37,138 nucleotides of DNA from Neoconidiobolus thromboides FSU 785 (lineage: Eukaryota; Fungi; Entomophthoromycota), in the NCBI GenBank assembly GCA_025603075.1, contig MU626448.1:1-37138 (forward strand), in the 5' to 3' direction. Shown here in pieces: positions 33 through 37,132 of this stretch. Under the pieces are notes generated by a model. That model had not been told where the DNA came from. It did not search any database and saw only the letters and a list, made by a program, of their open reading frames with translations. The stretch's first letter is position 1. Each line of letters opens with the position of its first letter. Both the position numbers and the translations under genes were made by a program.

Positions 33-3000
33 TTACTTTCTTGGCTCAGATTTTTTAGAGCTGTTTGAATTGGTCTTTGACCGTGCTAATAATCGTTGAG
101 GTTGTCTATTGACATTCGTTTGACGATTAAATGTAGTTGAGCGAATTGGACCTCCAGTAGCTCCAGTAGCTCCAGTAGCTCGAACTGGTTGAATTGGTTG
201 AACTAGCTTTGATCCATTTTTCAAATTTGAATCTTTACGAATAATACTCTTTTTTTCACTCAATTTTTCTCCACCTGATTGAACAGTAGTAACACTTGAT
301 TCGGATTTTTCTTCTTTAACTTGAGGAATTTCATTGATATCAGTTACTACATAATCCTGAGGATTAATTAAAGGCCACTCTTTTGGATATTCTTCAGTAT
401 TAATGTTGAATTGATCTGGATTACTAGTTTCGATCTAAAATAATAAAAATGATTTAAAAAACCGTTATCAAATACTATAATTTAAAATTACCATAAACTG
501 CTCATTCACAAAAGTAGTTGTAAGATTGAGATTCGTGTTATTAAGCTCACTGAGTTTTATGATTTCTGGAAGTACAGATTCATCGACATGTGTCTTGGCA
601 AGTCCAACTAGGTTGTCTTTACTCTTGTTTACTGAGTCATTGAGATGTGACATTGAAGTAACATGATTAGATTGTAGATTTTTTAAAGTTGAAGTCATTA
701 TTTCTAAATGTTTTTCTAATGTCTTATTTCCATTATCAATATGGGAATGACAAGTGTTTATTTCATCATTGTATTGATTTTTGTTGCTGGTTGTTACTTG
801 TTTCATTTCTTCATGAGATTTGTTAATGATATTTTTGTTGTTATTAGTCAAATTAGTAATGTTATTTGAGTATTCCAATGAGACTATGCGATATTTATCA
901 AGAGTCATGGAAGTATCTTCTAAAAATAAACCCTGCTTTTTGTTCTCTTTTTGATAATTATTATTGGAGTTTTCTAATGATTGAGTAAACTTTGTATAAA
1001 CATTTTCCTCATATGCCTCTCTTGAGTGTAACATACTTAAATGCTTATCCATAGCATTAGAAAGATTACTATGATGATAGGAAGAGTATTCTTTGAGAGC
1101 ATTTTCCATAGTAGAAATTACTTTGGCTCTTTGTAAAGCTTCCGACTCTTTAACATCTTTCAATAGCTTCTCAGACCATTCATATTGAGCTCTTAGTTTT
1201 TGTACTTCGATTTCACGTTCCTTTTTCAATTCCTCCATTTGATTATCATACTCCTCGGTTTTTTTTTGAAATGATAAACTATATTCCTGCTTCATATCAT
1301 TAACTTTAACATTAAATTCATTTCCTAAAGCTTCGATTTGATGACTAAAGTCACTATTATTTTGATCAATTGTAATTGAAAATTGATCTAAAGTATCACA
1401 AGTAAATAAAGTCTGTTTTTCAATTAGACCGGTAAGTTCATGGAAACAAGTTGCAAGGCTTCGAACTGATGATTTGATAAACCCAAGATTATCTTCAAGT
1501 TTATCTTTATTAGTCGATGTTAAAGCATTGAGTTGCTCAAAACAATTCTTAATATTACTAGTAATATCTGCTGATTTTATTGTAAGTGAGTTCATTAATG
1601 CCTCTGATACACTATTAATTCCATTTTTAAATTCAAGGTTAGATTTAGATAATTGTTGTAACCTTGAATTTGATTCCTCAAATTTAAAAGAAGTGTTAGA
1701 TAATAACTCATTGGCAAATTTCATATTAGTTTCAGCAGCCCTATACTTATCGCTAACAACTTTAAATAAATCTTCCAATTGTTTACTTTTCATAATAGTA
1801 GTATCTAGTAAATCTCTAGCTACTTTATCTAATTGGGCTTCACTCGATAGATAAGCATCATTTTGTCTCTTTAAAGTTTCAATCTTCAATAAAGCTTCTT
1901 CAAGTTTCTTATTGCTGGTTTCTAAATGAATCTTGGTTGTTTCAAGTTCATTGGTTTTCTCATTAAGTTCATTATCCTTCAAAATCAACTCTTTTTTATT
2001 CTCTTCAAACTTGTTACTAAGATCTGAATTTATTTGTTGTAATTCATTAATTTCCGAGTTCAATCTCTTAGTTTCAAATTCCAATTCTTTAGATCCATTG
2101 GTTAATTTTTCATAAACATCATTAGCTAAATATGCCCCATCTTTATCGCGTTGTGCCTTTAAGCTAGCTGCCATTTTTTGATATTCTGTTTTATATTCTA
2201 AATAAAGAGCAGCTTCTCCAAGAGAAATGTTAGCTCTAGGTCTGTTTTTGATAGACATTGCTTGTGAAGCATATTTAATTGTATTGATACTTTCCTTTAA
2301 ATCGTTCTCAAGTAAAGAAACAGTTGCTATCATGCGTGTTTTTGTGCCACCACCTAATGAATCTTCAAGGATACGTGTTAATTTGGAATTTCTAAATGTT
2401 AAGCCTCCAGTTGAATTAGGGTTCAATTTAGAAGAACTTCTATCAGAAAGATCTTTTATAATTTGACCTAAAGTAAGTAAAGAACGATTGATTTTACCAG
2501 CTTCAGCTGCTTGAGCTTTTTCAGCACCTGACCTTGAAATATCTTCGGATCCAGCAAGATCTACAAGATGTAATTTGCCTGTCGTGAAATACTTTTCATC
2601 GCCATTTTTTGAATTGATTTTAATTTTAAGAGTATATATACAATGAGAACGACTTGAGCTCTTATTAAGCTTTGTTGAGGCAGTATGACGCATGGCTGCT
2701 CCTTTTTCTAATAAAGCAACACCTTCAGATGGGTTAGTAATTACTGTTTCTGCTAATCCTTTAATAACAAGATCCTTTTCAAGCCCTTTAATAAGAATAA
2801 GTTTAGATAATTCAGTACCTGGTTCGTTTGCACCAAGAAGGTCATAAACCTCCTCATTATAAATTTCAATCATAGAAACCTTTATCAATGACATGTTTTC
2901 TTTGTCTGATTCAAGTTTCTCAAATATTTCATATAAAGTTCTTGGTATAATACCTGAATTACCTGAGGGCATAAACTGTACTTCGTCTAATTTTCCTTCC

Positions 3001-3416
3001 ATGGTATGAGTCTTTCCTGTACCAGTTTGTCCATAAGCAAAAAGGGTACAACTATATCCTGATAATACTTCATCGATCATTGGTGAGACTATTTCATCAT
3101 AAACTGCTTTTTGTGAGGCTGCAGGACCAAATACTCGATTAAAAGAATAAGGTCTAGTCACATAACGCTCAGAAGTTCCTTCTTTATAACTAACTTCATT
3201 ATTTTCTTCAGAAGCTTCAATGCCTATTTTTTTACCAACTAAAACACTTTCTGGACCACGACAACGAATGTAAACTTGGATAGGACAATCAATTGGTGTA
3301 TCTTTTTCTGGTTCATTTTTACGTTTTTTAAGGGCAGGTGGAGGTATACTTGAATCTAAGGACTTAACTTTATTTTCTAATTTTCTATTAAAACTATTGG
3401 TTTGTGGAATGGACAT
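33..3416 (-). CDS. bimC: Kinesin-5 (BimC/Eg5 family) motor protein, 2 exons (3416-492, 434-33), about 1108 aa
   Basis: N-terminal motor with FAYGQTGTGKTHTM (P-loop), SSRSH (switch I), LVDLAGSE (switch II) and INRSLLTLG, followed by a long coiled coil. A GT-AG intron at 491-435 joins the 982-aa ORF in frame to the 33..263 ORF. Confidence 0.9.
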
Positions 3417-3720
3417 TTTGAGACAAAGTTTATAAATAATTAATCTTTAAAAGATTCAAACATAGAACAAAATCTTATTGAAAATGTAAAAAATAATTGT
3501 TTGCCTATCTCTTTAATTGGCCAAAAGTTAAATTGGGCTGCAAATCATTGAGGTTGTAAATTTATGGGAACAAAACTTAATTCTATAATTTACCCAATGC
3601 TACTCTAATTTTTCTTTGTTTTCTAATTGGTTACGTATCCCTTCCGAAATCTATCCCTTGCTTAAATATGCTATGCTTTATTAAAAAAACATAATCATAC
3701 CAATAAATGCATCCATTATT

Positions 3721-14589: not shown

Positions 14590-16227
14590 ATGAGTAACCA
14601 TTCAGCCTATAATTCGCCATTAACTTCTCGTTATGCATCTAAAGAGATGTCTTACAACTTCTCAGATGATAAAAAATTTTCAACTTGGAGAACTCTTTGG
14701 TTAAACTTAGCTACTGCTGAGAAAGAACTTGGCATCGGGGGTATTACTGATGAAATCTTAAAAGAGATGAAAGATAATTTAGTAAGTGAAATATAATATA
14801 ACTGATAAGATATTGAATCGATTGTTAGACAAATATTGATTATACAATCGCTGCCGAGGAAGAAAAGCGCAGACGTCATGATGTTATGGCTCACGTACAT
14901 ACCTTTTCGATTGCTTGTCCAAACGCAGCTCCAATCATTCATTTAGGAGCAACCTCATGCTTTGTTACCGATAACGCTGATCTTATTGTTTTAAGAGATG
15001 GGTTAGATTTACTTTTATCAAAGCTTGTACCTGTTGTTGAGTCCTTAGCCAAATTTTCAGTTGATTATAAAGACTTACCAACCCTTGGATTTACCCACTT
15101 TCAACCTGCCCAGCTTACCACTGTTGGTAAAAGAGCTACTTTATGGCTCCAGGTATTGCGACTGGAATTATTTTTATAGTTATAAATTATAATAATTATT
15201 TTAGGAACTTTTATGGGATCTTAGAAATATTGGTCGTGCTCGTAATGACCTCAGATTCCGTGGTGTTAAAGGTACTACAGGTACCCAAGGATCTTTCCTT
15301 TCACTCTTCCAAGGCGATCATGAAAAGGTAAGCAAAATAATATTACTAATAATTTTTTAATTAAAGCAAATAGGTTGAAAAACTTGACGAATTAGTAACC
15401 AAACTTAGTGGTTTTGAAGTACCATATGCTGTTACTGGTCAAACCTATTCCCGTAAAGTAGATATTGATGTTGTCAATTCTTTATCTTCTTTCGGTGCAA
15501 CTGCTCATAAGATCGCTACTGATATTAGACTACTTGCTAACCTTAAAGAAATTGAAGAACCATTTGAAAAGGATCAAATTGGGTCTTCTGCTATGGCTTA
15601 TAAGCGCAATCCTATGCGCTGTGAGCGTATATGTGCCTTGAGTAGGCATTTGATGACTTTATCTGGCAACACATTAGCCACTGCTAGTGTACAATGGTTA
15701 GAACGTACTTTAGATGACTCTGCTAATCGTCGTATCACTTTAGCTGAATCATTTTTGACCGCCGATATTGTACTTACCATCCTTCAAAATGTAATTGAAG
15801 GTTTAGTTGTTTACCCACAAGTAATCCAAAGCCGTATCCAACAAGAATTACCATTCATGGCTACTGAAAATATTATCATGGCTATTGTTAAGGCTGGTGG
15901 TGACCGTCAAGTATGTCATGAAAAAATTCGAGTACTTTCTCATCAAGCAGCTTATGCTGTTAAAGCAGAAGGTAAACCAAACAACTTGATCCAATTGGTT
16001 AGAGAAGATCCTTATTTCGAACCTGTTTGGGCACAGGTAATATATTATTGATTAGGTTTTTCATTTTTTAATACTTCAATTAGCTTGATGAATTATTGAG
16101 ACCATCCACTTTTATTGGACGCGCACCTCAGCAAGTGGCTTCCTTTATAGAGAAAGAAGTCAAACCTGCTTTAGATAGTTACCCACAATTCGTTGGTAAA
16201 AGATTTGATTCCAGTTTAAATGTTTAA
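14590..16227 (+). CDS. ADE13: Adenylosuccinate lyase (multi-exon)
   Basis: [66 protein letters not shown], the fumarate-lyase signature [28 protein letters not shown] and FIGRAPQQV; short GT-AG introns. Confidence 0.97.
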
Positions 16228-16717
16228 AAGAGGCATTATAGAGATTTATAAAATAATAAATAGGTGTAAACAGCACTTTTTACCTTTATCAGTTTTGATA
16301 AGATAGCTTGTATCATAAATTTGATTTTATAGTTAATACAATTTTAGAATATTAAATTGATTAAATTGGATAGTAATTTAGTAATTAAATTTTATCATAT
16401 AAAAAAGCTTAATCTAAAATAACTTACTATACTAATATTTATAATAAACACCAAATACCCAAACATATTGTTGTTTGTAAAGTCAGTGTAAAATAAGAGA
16501 ATAAAAAACAAACAAATGGTACTTAGTTAAAACAAAGCTTCAAAGCTATTATTCAGTACAAATAATACCTGTTAAAAGTTTAAATAACATTGAGAGAATT
16601 GAAAATCCAGTGTTTTGTTCTTATTTTAACAACTCTAACATGCTAAAAAAGTCATTTAAGTTCTCTTTATTGATTCACTGGTTATTAAACGATAGTATAT
16701 GATACAAAATAGCATAT

Positions 16718-16816
16718 GGTGATGTTTTTTTTGGTTTCATTACTTTTTCCATCCTCTAAGTACTATTTGAGCGGAAAAATTATTAATAAAACCCTTAAAT
16801 ATAAAAATACATCCCC
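16718..16816 (+). mobile_element. MITE copy with ATAT TSD
   Basis: ATAT|ggtgatg...acatcccc|ATAT, 99 bp. Confidence 0.85.
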
Positions 16817-17105
16817 ATATAAGAAAAGGAAAAAAATAATAGGTTAATTTTGGTATCATTAACGAAGATAAGTAAAGTTAGAAAATAATCGACTTTAAAT
16901 GATAATTAAAGATTTTGAAGTAGATGTATTAACTAAAGGTATCTAGTAACAGGTTGGTAACAAGCTTCTATTTCATTATAAAGAACTTTAGACGATAAAA
17001 TGTTTAAACTAATTGTAAGGCTTTATTCGTTTCAATAATATCTTAAAAACAAAACTTTAACCCAGATACTAAAATAATTGATGACTAATAAGGACCATTA
17101 TTTCC

Positions 17106-18017
17106 TCAAATAGGCAAATTAGCAATAATTGCATTGATCAAATTTTCATTTCCATATCTATTTCTATCACGATAGGATTTTGAAAGTTCAATATGGATGC
17201 CACCACCATTTCTATTTGCTACATTCTTTTCATGGATTCCAGCTAAATCACTAACGCCATTCACTACAATATCATTATTTACATAATGACACGAAGGCAC
17301 GTTATCTTGGTTTTTACAATAAACAACCTTTTCATTATTACCAATAGAATTCTGAATGTCTCCAGCAACCTTTTGGACGTTTTTATAACGACCTCCAACA
17401 ATCACTTGAATATCACCTCTTTCAGCAAACCCATGCCATGAAACAATAAATTTGGATCTAATAAGGTTTGAAAGTTTAGTTGTATTAAAGACAGTGGCAG
17501 TGACATGCATGGCATTTGGATGGCAAATTTGCTTTTTAATACAATTTTCTTTGATGGTATCAGGGCATCGAGACTTGTTAAACTTTTCGTTAATAACATT
17601 CTCAATTTTTTCACAGCAAACATTTTTATTACAGTTATCAGTTCGAATCTTATTACTAGTTTCTCCATTTATACTGCAATTAAAGTTATAAAAGCTTGCA
17701 TTATCAAGTCTGCTATATAACTTATTTGCAAAGTTGTCTGAGTTTAACTCAATGAAACCCCCATGAATCGCAATTGATGCCACACTCTGACTAGAGCTAG
17801 TCTTATCTTCACGGATACCAATGAATGGGATGCTTACTTGCCTGGAGCTCGGATTAGCTTTGTGGACAGCAAATGGTGTGGCCTTTTCTTGCCTTGGTTT
17901 AATCTCAATGGTCTCGACTGCAGCGTTAGGATTTGCATTCATAGCATCGCCAACACTGGTATAAAAATCAGCAGCAAAGATAGATGATAGGAATAAGAAC
18001 ACATTGGATAGCTTCAT
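17106..18017 (-). CDS. Secreted poly-gamma-glutamate hydrolase-like zinc peptidase (PghP/DUF867-like), copy A, 303 aa, intronless
   Basis: Signal-peptide-like MKLSNVFLFLSSIFA (true ATG at 18017). Motifs VASIAIHGGFIE, MHVTATVFN, IVSWHGF, VIVGGR and NVANRNGGGIHIELS match the ordered PghP-family motifs (AIHGGxIE, HITSTxFD, SxHG, vGG, NxxNR..G.qlE.S). Confidence 0.75.
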   Translation of the reverse strand: MKLSNVFLFLSSIFAADFYTSVGDAMNANPNAAVETIEIKPRQEKATPFAVHKANPSSRQVSIPFIGIREDKTSSSQSVASIAIHGGFIELNSDNFANKLYSRLDNASFYNFNCSINGETSNKIRTDNCNKNVCCEKIENVINEKFNKSRCPDTIKENCIKKQICHPNAMHVTATVFNTTKLSNLIRSKFIVSWHGFAERGDIQVIVGGRYKNVQKVAGDIQNSIGNNEKVVYCKNQDNVPSCHYVNNDIVVNGVSDLAGIHEKNVANRNGGGIHIELSKSYRDRNRYGNENLINAIIANLPI

Positions 18018-18050
18018 CCTTAACAAAAGTTAATTCCAAAAAATGTCAAT

Positions 18051-18065
18051 TTTCTACTTTTTATA
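18051..18065 (-). promoter_or_regulatory. TATA-box-like element upstream of Pgh-like copy A
   Basis: TATAAAAAGTAGAAA starts 48 nt upstream of the ATG. The identical 15-mer lies at the identical distance upstream of copy C. Confidence 0.55.
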
Positions 18066-18539
18066 GTTGACATTTTAAGGTTTTTGTTTTATTGGCTATA
18101 TTAGGATAGATTAACTTTGGAATTATCAACAACCTTTGAATCTATTTTTATTCTTATACCAAAGCGTATACATAACTGCAACAAGAGCACTCCGATTTTA
18201 AGCATTATCCGCAAAATAGCTCTAAATCCCATAAAAAACACAAAATAAGTCATAAAGTAAGTGTAATGATTTAGAGTCTTGACATACTATCTAAAGGGTT
18301 TTATTTTATTAAAGTAATGTAAAATGTTAAACTTACTATTATTAGAATCAAGGGATGTCTCAAAACCACTTTTTAAAAAAGGTAGTTTATAAAAGTCATT
18401 TTGATCTTGAATACAAAAATTTATGCAGAAAAGTTAAAGCGCTATATTTCTACTTTATATTAAAGCATTTGATCATAAATAAAATTTTTATTATATATGT
18501 AGATAGAAACATAACCAAAAAGGGCTTTATCTTCTTTGA

Positions 18540-19445
18540 AAAAGTAAGTTTTTTAATGATTCTATCAACCATACTCTTATTTGCGTCCTTATATCTATCA
18601 CAATAGGATTTGGAGAGTCTAATATGAATATCATCGTCATTTCTATTTGGAGATGTTTTTTTCGGCTTCATTACTTTTTCCATCTTTTAAGCGCTATTTG
18701 AGCGAAAAAATTGCTAGTAAAATTCTTAAATACAAAAATACATTCTCATTTGTTACATCCTTTTTGTGCATTCTAGCAAATTCACCAATACCACTTACTT
18801 CGCTGTTATTATCAACATAATAATAGGAATACGTATTTTTTAGTATTTATAACAAACCACTCTACATTATAGTTAAGAGAGTCATGAATGTCTTTAGCAA
18901 TCTTTTAGACATTATAACGTCCTCCTCTAACAACTACTTGAATATCTCTTCCTTTGTCAAAACCATCCGATGAAACAATGAATATAAGTTTAATAAGTTT
19001 TCAAAATTTAACTGTACTAAAAATAACAGGACAATATACATAGCGTTGACAAACATCTTTTTTACTACAATATCTTCCAATGGGATCAGAGCATTGAGAA
19101 CCATGAAATTTTTATCTCCATTCCCATTAATATTTTGACAACAGACACTTTTATGCCAATTAAAAGTTCGAACATTTTTACTATCTCCATCACTTAATTT
19201 ACAATTAAAATTATAAAAAGCTCGATTTATCAAAGTCTACAAAATAGAAGGTTTGTAAGGTCATCTAAGTATTCTTCAATAGTACCTTTATGGATTGAAA
19301 TCAATGACACATACCCTCGTTCAGGACCTCGTATAATCTATTCAACTGGAGCAAAAGGATTTACATGTATCCCATCATTAGTACTAGTATAAAAATCACT
19401 AGCGAAAATGGATGATAAAAGTAAGGACACTTTAAATAGTTTCAT
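18540..19445 (-). pseudogene. Pgh-like copy B: pseudogene with stops, frameshifts and a MITE insertion
   Basis: MKLFKVSLLLSSIFASDFYTSTND...VE*...SLISIHKGTIE..., frameshift, FYNFNCKL..., DVTN[MITE]RNDDDIHIRLSKSYCDR; colinear with copies A and C. Confidence 0.85.
18649..18747 (+). mobile_element. MITE copy with ATTT TSD, inserted in the Pgh-like pseudogene
   Basis: ATTT|ggagatg...cattctc|ATTT, 99 bp. Removing it plus one TSD restores the paralog-colinear frame. Confidence 0.9.
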
Positions 19446-20455
19446 TCTATAAAGTTTAACTTAATTTAGTAAAGTCAATGTTTTGATTTTTTATACTTCA
19501 AGCCTATCGATAATCCCTTTGATCGATTTGAGTTCAATAGGGTGTAAGCAATTTAGCTGATTCTATATGCAAAAATAAATGCAGCAGTTATTATTGTTAT
19601 TTTTGGATCCTACTTAGTATAAAAAAGTTAAATTACATAGTTTATGTTTGCCTTTTACAGCTATCTAACTTTAAATGTGTAGTATTTTCTATTAGATTAA
19701 TTTAAATATGGGCTGGTCATTCTCAATTTTGTATTTGTCAAATAGAAAGATAGAAAAACTATTAAGAATAAACTCAGCTATATAAAATTCAAAATGCTCA
19801 ATCCGTACTTAAATTGGTTTAAGGGAAATACCATATATTTAAAGTTAATAGTTGTAAAAAGCTGTTTGAAATTTATTTTAAAGTCGAATTGTGAAGTGAC
19901 TATAATTTTTTACAGGATCCCAAGTACACTTTTAGATTTATACATTGTTCTCAAAAAAAAACTGTATATTTCAAAAAATAATTTTACACTCAATAAATTA
20001 AGTTAGTTTTCTAAAATCTTCAAAAGCTTTTAGTAAAGGGGGGGATATCCATTCTTGAAAAATTCCCACACTTTGAAATAACGCTGGTTTTACATACAAA
20101 TAGTTTAAGCCTGAAAACTTTTTCTCTAAGTAGATGAATGATTTTTTCTCTAAGACATGAAATATTTAGAAGCTTAAATTTTTTTTGAGTGCGCAATTTT
20201 TTCCTAAGAGTATGTAAGCTTTTTTTTAAAATCAATGTATAAATCCGAAAATGTATTTGAAACCCTCTCTATATTGAACCTTTTTCAATATTATTGAAAT
20301 ATCTTCCAAAACAGATATATAGTAAAGAACAACCACCATTATAAACATAAAAGCTAATAAAAAGGTTAAAAAAACTCAACATAGCGATGCTTTACATCAA
20401 GGCATTTTACAATAAATAATAAATTTATTTTTATTATGCAATTTTAAATATCAGA

Positions 20456-21286
20456 CTAATAAGAGCTATCAATATTACGAATAGGTAAATTGTTGATGAT
20501 TGCATTAATCATTTTCTCATCTCCGTCCTTATTTCTATTACGATAGGATCTAGACATTTCAATATGAATACCACCACCATTTCTATTTGCTACATTCTTT
20601 TCATGAATTCCAGCCAATTCACCAATATCATTAACTTTACGATTGCCATTTACATAATAACAGTAAGGCGCATTGCCTCTATACTTGCAATAAACTACTT
20701 TGTTTTCATCACCAATAGAGTTTTGAATGTCTCCAGCAACCTTTTGGATGTTATCATAACGACCTCCAACAATCACTTGAATATCACCTCTTTCAGCAAA
20801 CCCATGCCATGAAACAATAAATTTTGACCTAATAAGGTTTGAAAATTTCTTAGAATCGAAAACAGTGGAAGTAACATGCATTGCGTTTGGATGGCAAACT
20901 TGCTTTTTTGTGCATTCTTCTTTGCTATCTTTACATTGAGTTTGATCATAGTCTTCATTGTTGTTATCATCAATTTTTTTACAACAAATTTTTTTATAAC
21001 AATTATTAGTTTCAATTCCATTGCTTATTTTCTCGTCTATACTACAATTAAAATTATAAAAAGCTGCACTATCAAGACTGTCATATAACTTCCTTGCAAA
21101 GTTATCAGAATATCTTTCAATAGTACCACCATGGATTGCAATTGATGCTACATCTGGTCGTCTAGAGTTTTTATCAACAACCTCTTTTACAGCATCAGGG
21201 TTTGCTTTCATGGCATCATTAGTGCTGGTATAGAAATCAGCTGCAAAAACAGATGATAAGAGTAAGGATAATTGAGATACTTTCAT
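20456..21286 (-). CDS. Secreted poly-gamma-glutamate hydrolase-like zinc peptidase (PghP/DUF867-like), copy C, 276 aa, intronless
   Basis: Signal-peptide-like MKVSQLSLLLSSVFA. Motifs VASIAIHGGTIE, MHVTSTVFD, IVSWHGF and NVANRNGGGIHIEMS; the same 9 Cys as copy A. Confidence 0.75.
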   Translation of the reverse strand: MKVSQLSLLLSSVFAADFYTSTNDAMKANPDAVKEVVDKNSRRPDVASIAIHGGTIERYSDNFARKLYDSLDSAAFYNFNCSIDEKISNGIETNNCYKKICCKKIDDNNNEDYDQTQCKDSKEECTKKQVCHPNAMHVTSTVFDSKKFSNLIRSKFIVSWHGFAERGDIQVIVGGRYDNIQKVAGDIQNSIGDENKVVYCKYRGNAPYCYYVNGNRKVNDIGELAGIHEKNVANRNGGGIHIEMSRSYRNRNKDGDEKMINAIINNLPIRNIDSSY

Positions 21287-21319: not shown

Positions 21320-21334
21320 TTTCTACTTTTTATA
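21320..21334 (-). promoter_or_regulatory. TATA-box-like element upstream of Pgh-like copy C
   Basis: TATAAAAAGTAGAAA, 48 nt upstream of the ATG, identical to copy A. Confidence 0.55.
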
Positions 21335-21669
21335 CTTGGTTTTTCGTCAACCATGATATTGCTGGCTATGCTAGATTGGCTAAACATGTAAGCATTTAAA
21401 ACCCAATGAAATCTTAATAAGATTTTACTTTAATTTTAAAAGCTAAAACTAAATGTGGCTTATGCTAACTATAATGTCAGAGAATTAGGATAGTTTTTAC
21501 ATAACTTTAAAAAGTTAAAAATACTTTTTACTATTATTTGTTATTCACCACTATTTAGTCTTTTATAATAAAAATTGTGATTCAATAGATCTGATTAATT
21601 TAGTAGTATACGAGATAGTGTTTTGGTGTTAATGTTTAGCTACTAAAAGTAGCTCAAAATTTAAGAATT

Positions 21670-21768
21670 GGGAGTGTTTTTTTTAACTTCATTATTTTTT
21701 CCATCTTTTAAACACTATTTAAGCGGAAAATTTGTTAGTAAAATTCTTAAACACAAAAATACATCCCC
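21670..21768 (+). mobile_element. MITE copy with AATT TSD
   Basis: AATT|gggagtg...acatcccc|AATT, 99 bp. The reconstructed empty site AAGAATTCTT is palindromic. Confidence 0.92.
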
Positions 21769-23317
21769 AATTCTTTATAAAAATAGACAAAAACATATGC
21801 CCATAAATAATCTAACTTTACAAGCTTATTTTTCATTTCTTACAATTTTTGGTTAAATTTACAGCAATGTTTAATAAAACAGAATGGTTTAATAAAATAT
21901 TATCAGAAATAAAGGAAAATGGATTAAGTAAATTTAAAATAGCTATGCAATATAGGACAAACTAATGACCAAACAATAGAAGATGAATCACTCATGTCTT
22001 TATTTACAATATTCCATATCAATAAAGTTATAAACTCTCTTAATTTGATTGATGAAGGAAATGGTAATATTCTAGCCCTTTTATAATAGTTTTAATTTTA
22101 TTATTCATTAAGTTATTGTATTACCTAATTCACATCTATTTTCATATGAGGTAAATTAATTACATTAATTATAATTATTAATGATTGTAAAGCTTAATGA
22201 TAAAAATACAAAGATCTATTGTAGATTAAAACCAAAATGTTATTGTACTTGTGTCGAGTTTTATCAGCTAGGTAAAGCTGAATCATATATAAACAACTTT
22301 TTCTAACTTACTTTATAAAAAGCTATTTATAGTTCCGATGTTAAAGTGGTAAGCCTATTGCATTTTGGCTCATTTTAACTTATCTATTTCTATAGTGTCA
22401 TCATTTACTTAGTATTAATTTACTTGAAGCAATAATGGAATCTGGGAAAGAAAATAATATACAATTCAATGATAAGTCAAAAGATAAACTCACATTTAAT
22501 GATTGTCATTTTCTTTATCTAAATATTTAAAATCTCCTGCTATCACCAGATCATATTTTGGATTATTGCATGCGATTAAAGGTTATTTTCAGGAAGATAA
22601 GGAGTTAATTTTATAGTTAATAGGTTTTATTTGAAAGCGATTGAAAAATAGTATAAAAGTATTGTGATATTACTTAACCAAGTAACTGTGATTACCTTTT
22701 TGCTTTATCATTCTATCCATTTATATACAATATTAAATAAAGAATCATTAGCTGAATACTCAAACAAAGAAGACTTAAATACGTTATTATTAACCATATC
22801 TAGGCTTTATCACGTTAACATAAATTTCAGTTTTTATTATTTATTCAAATTTTGATGCTATAAAAATTCACTAAATAAATTAAATTTATGATATATTACA
22901 ATTGATATAATTATATAAAGCTAATTAAACCATAATAAATTTTATCCAATTGTAATAATACAAGTACAAGAATTATTGCTAGATTCCTCAAAAAAATAGA
23001 TATTTACATGTATTAACATATATACCTACATGCTTTAGAATCGTTGTTCTTTTAAATACAATTACATACCATTTCGCCATCGTAATTCCTTCTTGCTATT
23101 ATCAAAATGAATCAGTGCAAAAGAATATTTCATTCATTCTATAGCAGGATAAATACCTTTGCTCCATTTATTAATCATAAATGTATTCTTATTAGTAATA
23201 TGGGATTGAAGATATCCTTCGAACTTAGGCAAGTCAGATATTAATCCAGTTGATTTCTTTTGGTCCTCAGGTATGTATAGATATTGATCCTATGCTTAAT
23301 ATAAATAATACCATCAT

Positions 23318-36214: not shown

Positions 36215-37132
36215 ATGAGTAATAGAAAACTCAACTTAATTTTACGTAAAGTAGTTCAACAAATAGTATCGATTGAACAATCAGAAGGTGTAGGTGGCAG
36301 AGTACGACGTAGCATCGGTACTTCTAGATTAAGAAATCTTGATCCCTTCTTAATGTTAGATGAATTCCATATACAATATCCAGGAGGCTTCCCCGATCAT
36401 CCACATCGAGGATTTGAAACTGTCTCCTATATATTCACTGGAACTAATCAACATGAAGACTTTATTGGAAATCAAGGTATCATTGGACCAGGTGACTTAC
36501 AATGGATGACTGCAGGAAAAGGAATAGTTCATGCAGAAATGCCATTACCACAAACTAAAGGACCAGTCACTGGTTTACAACTATGGATTAATTTACCAAA
36601 AAAAGAAAAAATGTGTGAACCTAGATATCAGGATTTCAAAGATAATGAAATACCTAGAGTAATACCAGAAGTAGGAGTGGAGATTAAAGTAATTGCTGGT
36701 GAGGCTTATGGAACTCAGTCATCTATTAAAACCAGTAATTCAGTTTATATGATGGATTTTAAAATGGAAGCAAATAAATCAGCTTATCAAATCTTACCAG
36801 CTGGATTTAATAGTGCATTTATTTATACTATTAAAGGCCAAGTGGAAGTTGCACAAAATGGGAAATTAGTTTTACCTCATACAATAGTAGTATTTGATAA
36901 AGAAGGTGGGGATGAAGTTAGTCAAATCTTAATTAATAGTCATAATGAAAAGGTTCATTTTGTTTTGATTGCTGGTAAACCTATTAATGAACCTATTAAA
37001 CAATATGGTCCTTTCGTTATGAATGATCAAGAAGATATTAATAATGCTTTTTTGGATTACCAGTTTAATAAAAATGGGTTTGAGAAAGCAAAGAACTGGA
37101 AATCGATTATTGGAAGAAGAACTTTTATTTAA
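36215..37132 (+). CDS. Pirin (bicupin, iron-binding), intronless, 305 aa
   Basis: LDPFLMLDEF, GFPDHPHRGFETVSY, QWMTAGKGIVHAEMP, GLQLWINLP and GKPINEPIKQYGPFVMN. Confidence 0.95.
   Translation: MSNRKLNLILRKVVQQIVSIEQSEGVGGRVRRSIGTSRLRNLDPFLMLDEFHIQYPGGFPDHPHRGFETVSYIFTGTNQHEDFIGNQGIIGPGDLQWMTAGKGIVHAEMPLPQTKGPVTGLQLWINLPKKEKMCEPRYQDFKDNEIPRVIPEVGVEIKVIAGEAYGTQSSIKTSNSVYMMDFKMEANKSAYQILPAGFNSAFIYTIKGQVEVAQNGKLVLPHTIVVFDKEGGDEVSQILINSHNEKVHFVLIAGKPINEPIKQYGPFVMNDQEDINNAFLDYQFNKNGFEKAKNWKSIIGRRTFI

Follow-up and report, generated by a model that had tools for sequence, protein, structure and literature searches.

The fungus Neoconidiobolus thromboides FSU 785 (Entomophthoromycota) carries a tandem family of genes that probably encode secreted, zinc-dependent gamma-glutamyl peptidases of the PghP/PghL family (PF05908 in Pfam, M86 in MEROPS). 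The genes lie on the minus strand at positions 17106-21286 of the window, by which we mean the whole stretch of 37,138 nucleotides that was analyzed (positions 1 to 37,138 of scaffold MU626448.1, assembly GCA_025603075.1). They are three co-oriented paralogs of a single gene: copies A and C are intact, with 68% protein identity, and the middle copy is decayed.

A preliminary description, made from the letters of the window, had proposed three co-oriented and intronless paralogs, two of them intact with signal-peptide-like N-termini and a series of ordered motifs, and had related them to the poly-gamma-glutamate (gamma-PGA) hydrolase PghP. The present analysis bears this out. Open reading frames and repeat families place copy A, the dead copy, and copy C on the minus strand. 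The motifs AIHGGxIE, HVT(S/A)TVF, SWHG, VGG, and NVANRNGGGIHIExS are all found in copies A and C, together with the N-termini (read by eye), and RNA contigs run colinearly over copy A. The homology to PghP is recovered both by profile search and by superposition of a structural model.

Family, fold, and active site

Membership of the PghP/PghL family is supported by sequence profile, by modeled fold, and by the predicted catalytic residues. PF05908 (Gamma_PGA_hydro) is the sole Pfam family reported for the intact copies, with E-values of 1.3e-13 for copy A (51.3 bits) and 3.8e-16 for copy C (59.6 bits), at a cut-off of 22; a search of the array proteins against NCBIfam gave no match. The best matches among PDB sequences, using phmmer, are YndL/PghL (2e-7) and then a phage poly-gamma-glutamate hydrolase. 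We built an AlphaFold2 model of copy C on an alignment of 19 sequences, with a mean predicted local distance difference test score (pLDDT) of 78.7. The three top Foldseek matches of this model are PghL (5onj), the hydrolase of phage PM1 (21dc), and PghP (3a9l), with E-values between 7e-9 and 9e-7. The same three structures have VIA-align Z-scores of 20.3, 20.7, and 20.9, respectively, and the model superposes with a root-mean-square deviation of 2.1-2.4 A over 181-184 residues, of about 205. The next folds are N-formylglutamate amidohydrolase-like proteins, at Z 10.8-11.0, and cell-wall amidases with the D,L-carboxypeptidase Csd4, at Z of about 10.

Active-site residues were mapped by combining the phmmer alignment to 5onj with the roles published for PghL (PMC6506827), and are numbered here as in copy C. 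The predicted zinc ligands H52, E57, and H161 correspond to H41, E46, and H102 of PghL, and the predicted binders of substrate carboxylates, H137, T139, and S140, to H77, T79, and S80. The putative catalytic glutamate is E243 (in IHIEMS, on a strand of the model at 240-245), which matches E165 of PghL (in IQIEMS), and R249 matches the substrate-anchoring arginine R171. The zinc ligands are invariant in all 19 aligned sequences. They are likewise invariant, together with H137 and the catalytic glutamate, in the nine aligned fungal members, and R249 is invariant in a six-row fungal alignment and reads as arginine in each of the nine fungal rows.

The fungal proteins start with MK, about 12 hydrophobic or small residues, and V-F-A, followed by ADFY, a pattern that we read by eye in nine out of nine members. 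The N-termini of copies A and C align with the signal peptides of bacterial homologs, which stop right before the same D-x-Y motif, and the cysteine content of the proteins is in line with secretion. Between copies A and C, the rate of synonymous change (dS) is 0.85 and the ratio of nonsynonymous to synonymous change (dN/dS) is 0.24, which indicates an old duplication with both copies under purifying selection.

Fungal relatives and shared insertions

The closest relatives of the array proteins are few. When 1.84 billion cluster representatives were searched exhaustively with HMMER, 14 matches came out at E<=1e-3, and only two non-self matches fell below 1e-10: KXN70638 of Conidiobolus coronatus and a protein on a eukaryotic 22-kb metagenome contig of the Joint Genome Institute (JGI). 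From 5.8 billion sequences, a profile search retrieved only the window, C. coronatus, and unnamed contigs, and so yielded one further C. coronatus protein and three others. A word-indexed homolog search with copy C alone returned only the window's own two proteins, and a search of the JGI metagenome contigs with the fungal alignment gave no match. Identity between the window copies and these Conidiobolus-type relatives is 28-32%.

All nine fungal sequences have, along with the signal-like N-terminus, two insertions. Insertion 1 is cysteine-rich, spans 48-70 residues, and lies in the beta3-alpha3 loop; insertion 2 has about 20 residues and lies in the beta6-beta7 loop. Six cysteines of insertion 1 align around a C-x4-CC core, being invariant in the six-row alignment and conserved in the nine-row one. 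The spacing between the first and the second histidine is 85-109 residues in the nine fungal rows versus 30-56 in the 62 bacterial rows, which are those where both motifs could be located. Insertion 1 is present in none of these 62 and is thus exclusive to the fungal rows in this comparison. The spacing from the third histidine to the catalytic glutamate is 82-100 residues in the nine fungal rows; in bacteria, it is mostly 59-72, and it reaches 82-98 in five rows (three cysteine-rich cyanobacterial, one acidobacterial, and one from a deltaproteobacterial metagenome-assembled genome, whose value is probably due to a motif mis-hit).

C. coronatus has at least three copies of the subfamily, deposited as hypothetical proteins and already tagged by Pfam, of which KXN70638 lies among SURF4, mitochondrial-carrier, rhomboid, and SOD genes. 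KXN70638 (CONCODRAFT_170587), CONCODRAFT_170031, and the neighbor of the latter resemble the window copies in having a signal-peptide-like N-terminus, both insertions, the six aligned cysteines, and the full catalytic set, as well as in being intronless, multi-copy, and placed among ordinary eukaryotic genes. They differ in falling on the opposite side of the deep split within that clan of fungal sequences (see Origin), in having additional cysteines (a GCG near the catalytic glutamate and a C-terminal ..IC) and longer insertions, and in being dispersed or convergent, in contrast to the co-oriented array of the window. On KQ964479.1 of C. coronatus (L064:10001-15347), two intact genes of the subfamily are in convergent orientation, with 3.4 kb between them. 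Three co-oriented tandem copies adjoin a gene for an HSF DNA-binding protein on a contig of JGI metagenome 3300042649 (L002:2348-10199), and one of the three is an ortholog of CONCODRAFT_170031.

Among the sampled bacteria, a cyanobacterial and acidobacterial subgroup of PF05908 (loci L048, L050, L053, L056, L058, L059, and L062) has 6-10 cysteines, extensions rich in cysteine at the N-terminus, and a longer stretch ahead of the catalytic glutamate. It is the sole sampled bacterial group with any fungal-like elaboration, and a quick tree (see Origin) does not resolve it as sister to the fungal clan.

Expression

Of the two intact copies, the available RNA shows clear expression for copy A only. 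Contigs of the RNA data set X5 span copy A from 16762 to 17972, colinearly and with no joint, at a word depth of 1140-3583, and the exon of the neighboring adenylosuccinate lyase gene (ADSL) is at 1294. In the data set X6, contigs of 137-209 nt with depths of 471-998 cover 17119-17753; the summed bin depth reaches 2654, and that of the ADSL exon bin is 363. In both data sets, the depth of copy A therefore equals or exceeds that of this housekeeping neighbor. Intergenic bins have a depth of 0 and the 47-nt intron of ADSL is spliced out, so that the RNA contigs represent transcripts. Since they are colinear over copy A, this gene is intronless, and a segment of 33 residues that only copy A possesses is exonic. 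Copy C is nearly silent, with a depth of about 2-3.

Proposed history, mechanism, and substrate

The history that we propose starts in an ancestor common to this fungus and C. coronatus, which would have taken up a single gene of bacterial type in the distant past. While being inherited among fungi, this gene would have gained or kept a signal peptide, acquired a TATA promoter, and adopted the AT-rich codon usage of the host, and insertions would have grown in two loops of the cleft wall, one of them rich in cysteines. Local and independent duplications would have followed, giving here the highly expressed copy A, the intact and nearly silent copy C, and the dead copy. Once its signal peptide is cleaved, the enzyme would bind zinc through H52, E57, and H161 (in copy C), use E243 as general base, and hold the substrate carboxylates with H137, T139, S140, and R249. 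It would then cut gamma-glutamyl amide bonds outside the cell, either for nutrition or to strip slime or capsule of the Bacillus type. Secretion, disulfide bonding of the nine cysteines, and gamma-glutamyl hydrolysis are all predictions from the gene sequences. As for the substrate, our best guess, with about an even chance of being right, is bacterial poly-gamma-glutamate, because every characterized member of the family, i.e., PghP, PghL/YndL, and YoqZ, cleaves gamma-PGA (PMC4497714, PMC6506827) and because there is a fungal precedent in Myrothecium (see below).

Several points weigh against this reading. In PghL, the residues in contact with gamma-PGA are mostly kept across the whole PF05908 family; being conserved family-wide, they indicate a competent enzyme and not a particular substrate. 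PF05908 also occurs in many bacteria that are not known to meet gamma-PGA (PMC4497714). In copy A, an alanine replaces the residue equivalent to Ser80 of PghL, the lone difference among the mapped residues. The cleavable signal peptide is predicted by eye, as a signal-like N-terminus. The RNA evidence consists of assembled contigs, which come without strand information or growth conditions, and is qualitative. Regarding the origin, the fungal clan attaches to an unresolved bacterial base in the quick tree, with no bacterial sister resolved, and a horizontal origin is suggested by the wide presence of the family in bacteria and its near absence in eukaryotes, not by nesting in the tree. Finally, the substrate cleft of PghL is formed by the beta3-alpha3 and beta6-beta7 loops (PMC6506827), and both fungal insertions, whose modeling is of moderate confidence only (pLDDT 43-79), sit at these very positions.

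As both cleft loops carry fungus-specific insertions, the specificity may have shifted, e.g., to the gamma-D-glutamyl bonds of peptidoglycan. The proteins would then be secreted enzymes of the same family with a different target, either the stem peptides of peptidoglycan, which would make them antibacterial lysins, or another gamma-glutamyl or polyanionic amide found in soil, insect cadavers, or guts. This is the most serious alternative, although we judge it clearly less likely than the reading given above. Apart from the position of the insertions, it is favored by the fold neighbors that follow the gamma-PGA hydrolases (peptidoglycan amidases and Csd4, at Z of about 10), by the abundance of PF05908 members in bacteria without known gamma-PGA, which are the majority, and by the extreme divergence of the fungal clan, whose stem exceeds 1.3 changes per site. 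Yet the sole characterized members cut gamma-PGA, the carboxylate-binding set of PghL is kept, including the equivalent of Arg171, and the Z-scores of 20-21 to the gamma-PGA hydrolases are twice those to the cell-wall amidases. A bolder version, which we regard as rather unlikely, is that the Conidiobolus-type lineage turned the gamma-PGA hydrolase scaffold into a class of secreted effectors. The disulfide-rich cleft insertions would retarget these away from free gamma-PGA, for instance to bacterial cell-wall gamma-D-glutamyl bonds or to a polymer associated with the host or insect gut, and the repeated, independent tandem duplications would reflect an arms race with the bacteria of the niche.

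Origin

In our view, a bacterial-type gene was most likely acquired only once, long ago, and local duplications then arose separately in each lineage. A search with an alignment of four bacterial sequences found 60 bacterial loci of the family, spread over many phyla, and a scan of viral contigs with the same alignment found no relative. Eukaryote-type relatives among the 1.84 billion representatives are confined to Conidiobolus or Conidiobolus-like contigs, with the proviso that the indexes may miss members; the broad vertical distribution across fungi that the preliminary description had considered as a counter-indication is not seen there. In a quick maximum-likelihood tree of 76 sequences, in which no phage sequences were included, the nine fungal rows form one clan with a Shimodaira-Hasegawa-like approximate likelihood ratio test (SH-aLRT) value of 99 and the long stem mentioned above. 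It splits deeply into the window pair on one side and the Conidiobolus-type sequences on the other, and the two sides differ at 68-72% of residues. The analysis points to no donor clade among bacteria or phages.

The occurrence of the same derived subfamily in C. coronatus and in Conidiobolus-like contigs argues that the genes are not a recent or lineage-private import. They are instead old and adapted to the host in composition and regulation. The suggestion of a horizontal acquisition followed by amplification therefore stands in part: the tandem amplification and the rarity in eukaryotes of this bacterial-type family agree with it, but the idea of a recent import private to this lineage does not fit with the copies of C. 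coronatus.

An alternative is that of an ancient eukaryotic or fungal gene, lost nearly everywhere or passed between fungi, which we consider improbable. The lack of a bacterial sister group in the tree speaks for such a scenario, as do the full amelioration of the genes and the large divergence between the two fungal subclades, which implies that the family is old within fungi. But the 1.84 billion representatives hold no other eukaryote-type relative, the profile search of 5.8 billion sequences returned nothing beyond the window, C. coronatus, and unnamed contigs, and every other match is bacterial. Moreover, the genes have no introns in an intron-rich genome, and vertical descent would need very many losses.

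Alternative family and genomic residence

The preliminary description had pointed to N-formylglutamate amidohydrolase (FGase) as a competing best match, and one may ask if the proteins belong to this or another amidohydrolase family and resemble PghP only superficially. FGase-like structures (2odf and 2q7s) do appear in the fold lists, and a feature search of the Atlas lists one FGase cluster, at rank 38. Against this, Pfam gives PF05908 alone, with no match to PF05013; the Z-scores to 2odf and 2q7s are 10.8-11.0, compared to 20.3-20.9 for the gamma-PGA hydrolases; and the Foldseek E-value is 3e-4, compared to 7e-9. An FGase identity is rejected at the level of both profile and fold, and we deem it very improbable that the proteins belong to another family.

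The array is fungal DNA, and contamination and chimerism, the latter also raised in the preliminary description, are excluded for practical purposes. The 37-kb scaffold is AT-rich (22-37% GC per kb) and encodes kinesin-5 (468-3416), the last exon of ADSL, with its C-terminus (15593-16051), and pirin (36215-37132) on either side of the array. Just after the ADSL open reading frame, a 47-nt GT..AG intron lies at 16035-16081, and an RNA joint in run X6 confirms its splicing. In two further independent DNA samples, X2 and X4, assembled as Logan contigs, contigs tile the ADSL flank, copy A, the dead copy, and copy C, and are interrupted only at copies of a miniature inverted-repeat transposable element (MITE) and at a stretch common to A and C. 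Their depth over the array equals that of the flanks, about 35 in X2 and 20-35 in X4, as expected for single-copy DNA. GC content at third codon positions (GC3) is 0.29 in copy A and 0.22 in copy C, for 0.16-0.26 in neighboring genes. A bacterial or phage contaminant, or a chimera, might be suspected, since the genes lack introns, the family is mostly prokaryotic, and the assembly is a draft, but the chances of this are negligible given the placement between kinesin, ADSL, and pirin genes on one scaffold, the two samples that join the array to its flanks at equal single-copy depth, the host-like GC3, the presence of the host's own MITE within the dead copy and next to the intact ones, the eukaryotic TATA box at fixed spacing, and the eukaryotic surroundings of the nearest relatives in C. 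coronatus.

Relation to known systems

To our knowledge, few gamma-PGA-degrading enzymes have been found, and the characterized ones of the PghP family come from Bacillus phages and prophages. PghP of phage phiNIT1 (3a9l), PghL/YndL of Bacillus subtilis (5onj), and the PM1 hydrolase (21dc) share with the fungal copies the fold, the HxxxxE...H zinc site, the catalytic glutamate, the His/Thr/Ser/Arg binders, and a predicted mature N-terminus at the same D-x-Y motif. The fungal copies differ from them by having only 14-26% identity, by the insertions of 48-70 (cysteine-rich) and about 20 residues in the cleft loops, and by a predicted eukaryotic signal peptide and a eukaryotic promoter and genome context. 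The fungal proteins have 9-12 cysteines, compared to 0-2 in many of the sampled Bacillota homologs, a count that leaves aside the solved enzymes.

The existence of PghP-like genes in fungi is already known, and the family assignment is automatic via Pfam. Mamberti et al. (2015, PMC4497714) described such genes in Aureobasidium melanogenum and A. namibiae and interpreted them as products of a horizontal transfer through which these fungi can draw glutamate from the gamma-PGA of their environment. Like the window genes, they are bacterial- or phage-type PF05908 genes in a fungal genome. They differ in belonging to Ascomycota and in having been found by direct BLAST with PghP, so that they must be much closer to the bacterial enzymes (we compare them by description only), and they were presumably acquired independently. 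The poly(gamma-glutamic acid) endohydrolase that Myrothecium sp. TM-4222 releases outside its cells (Tanaka et al. 1993, as cited in PMC4914496) is a precedent for the secretion of such an activity by a fungus. In the accessible portions of its text and supplements, a survey of horizontal transfers in 44 early-diverging fungi (PMC11291939) does not mention the family.

What is new is a distinct subfamily, predicted to be secreted and defined by its cysteine-rich insertion, which is confined to Conidiobolus-type fungi as far as the searches reach, together with its repeated tandem amplification and the evidence for old, domesticated genes as opposed to a recent import. The array had been put forward as an undescribed, secreted enzyme system. 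The subfamily is indeed novel, but PghP-like genes in fungi had been noted before; the signal-like N-termini agree with secretion, and expression is clear for copy A only. If our reading is correct, this would be a clean case of an old transfer from a bacterium to a fungus that was later structurally elaborated. It points to a possible fungal means of feeding on, or dismantling, the Bacillus-type slime, biofilm, or capsule present in soil, cadavers, and guts, and the putatively secretion-competent enzymes with remodeled clefts may be of use for gamma-PGA processing.

Organization of the array

The coordinates of the features of the array are given in Table 1. For copy A, the listed open reading frame (17106-18026) begins at a TTG (18026), an artefact of how open reading frames are listed. 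The TATA box (TATAAAAA) is kept 48-50 nt before the ATG in all three copies, including the dead one.

Table 1. Features of the PF05908 array, in coordinates of the window
Feature	Positions	Strand	Basis
Copy A, intact PF05908 gene, 303 aa, ATG at 18017 (P0002)	17106..18017	-	ORF; Pfam; RNA contigs; dN/dS
Copy A, cysteine-rich insertion 1, beta3-alpha3 loop, between YxF strand and HVT(A) motif	17517..17681	-	alignments; His-to-His spacing
Copy A, in-frame 99-nt segment (33 aa) found in this copy only, 46% GC	17808..17906	-	A/C alignment; kept in RNA contigs
Copy A, signal-peptide-like N-terminus, residues 1-15, ..SIFA|ADFY	17973..18017	-	translation read by eye
TATAAAAA element, 48 nt upstream of copy A ATG	18058..18065	-	alignment of three upstream regions
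Decayed middle copy; stops, frameshifts, and loss of zinc and catalytic residues	18546..19445 (approx.)	-	tblastn with copy C; repeat families D1, D5-D8 in register with A and C
MITE of 108 nt within dead copy, between codons matching N234 and R235 of copy C	18647..18754	.	repeat family D4
TATAAAAA element, 50 nt upstream of dead copy's ATG	19488..19495	-	alignment of three upstream regions
Copy C, intact PF05908 gene, 276 aa (P0001)	20456..21286	-	ORF; Pfam; AlphaFold2 model; low RNA
Copy C, cysteine-rich insertion 1, residues ~80-133, Cys 81, 96, 101, 102, 118, 125, 131	20888..21049	-	alignments; His-to-His spacing; model pLDDT 43-79
Copy C, signal-peptide-like N-terminus, residues 1-15, ..SVFA|ADFY	21242..21286	-	translation read by eye; model residues 1-17 disordered
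TATAAAAA element, 48 nt upstream of copy C ATG	21327..21334	-	alignment of three upstream regions

The 99-nt segment of copy A is missing from copy C, from the dead copy, and from the Conidiobolus homologs, and no source for it was located in the window or in the fetched loci. The possibility of a retained intron is ruled out, since the RNA contigs keep the segment. Codons 151-180 of copies A and C (17328-17489 and 20699-20860) have 94% nucleotide identity, compared to 58-80% elsewhere, and short-read assemblies break at this tract. This suggests either gene conversion or a very strong constraint around the zinc ligand of the SWHG motif.

In the DNA sample X4, which carries a different organism label and is diverged by a few per cent, two contigs of similar depth cover 17635-17940, in the 5' half of copy A, with 1 and 26 differences. 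They may be alleles or haplotypes, or reveal an extra paralog in that strain.

The dead copy and its MITE

According to a tblastn of copy C against the region, the dead copy is interrupted by an in-frame stop near codon 36, and its frame changes three times or more. The HxTS motif, with the equivalent of His77, is gone, as the frameshifted stretch holds no recognisable residue; the third zinc ligand is altered (SWHG to SSDG), and so is the catalytic glutamate (IHIE to IHIR). Each of the three zinc ligands is either lost or altered there. RNA contigs cover the dead copy at 18719-19599 on the plus strand, with a depth of 54 in X5 and of 16 in X6, and no plus-strand open reading frame is evident over these positions. 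The X5 RNA skips a 49-nt piece at 19421-19469 that is bounded by GT..AG on the plus strand. There is thus a low-level spliced transcript, antisense to the pseudogene, from which the region of the former start codon is removed. Together with the 47-nt intron of ADSL, this 49-nt one indicates that the genome uses very short introns.

The MITE family has elements of about 100 nt and some 14 copies in the window, including those at 16716-16823, 18647-18754, and 21668-21775, i.e., about one per 2.6 kb. It was not present in 41 kb of Conidiobolus-type DNA, to which blastn found no similarity with any part of the window. An equal GC content had raised the question of whether the window is itself C. 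coronatus DNA; this is rejected, as the record is a different assembly and blastn gives no similarity, and the missing MITE, taken by itself, is weak evidence. Its word depth in the DNA runs is 1e5-2.7e5, compared to about 35 for unique sequence, which implies thousands of copies in the genome, and it is also plentiful among the RNA contigs.

Finally, the best match of the kinesin-5 open reading frame is in N. thromboides, with 39% identity over 97% of the query (E 8e-168), followed by Entomophthora and Basidiobolus, in keeping with a host that is an entomophthoralean-type zoopagomycete distinct from C. coronatus. Neither this genome's own protein nor the kinesin-5 of C. coronatus is among the top 120 matches, and the host lineage seems to be poorly sampled or fast-evolving.

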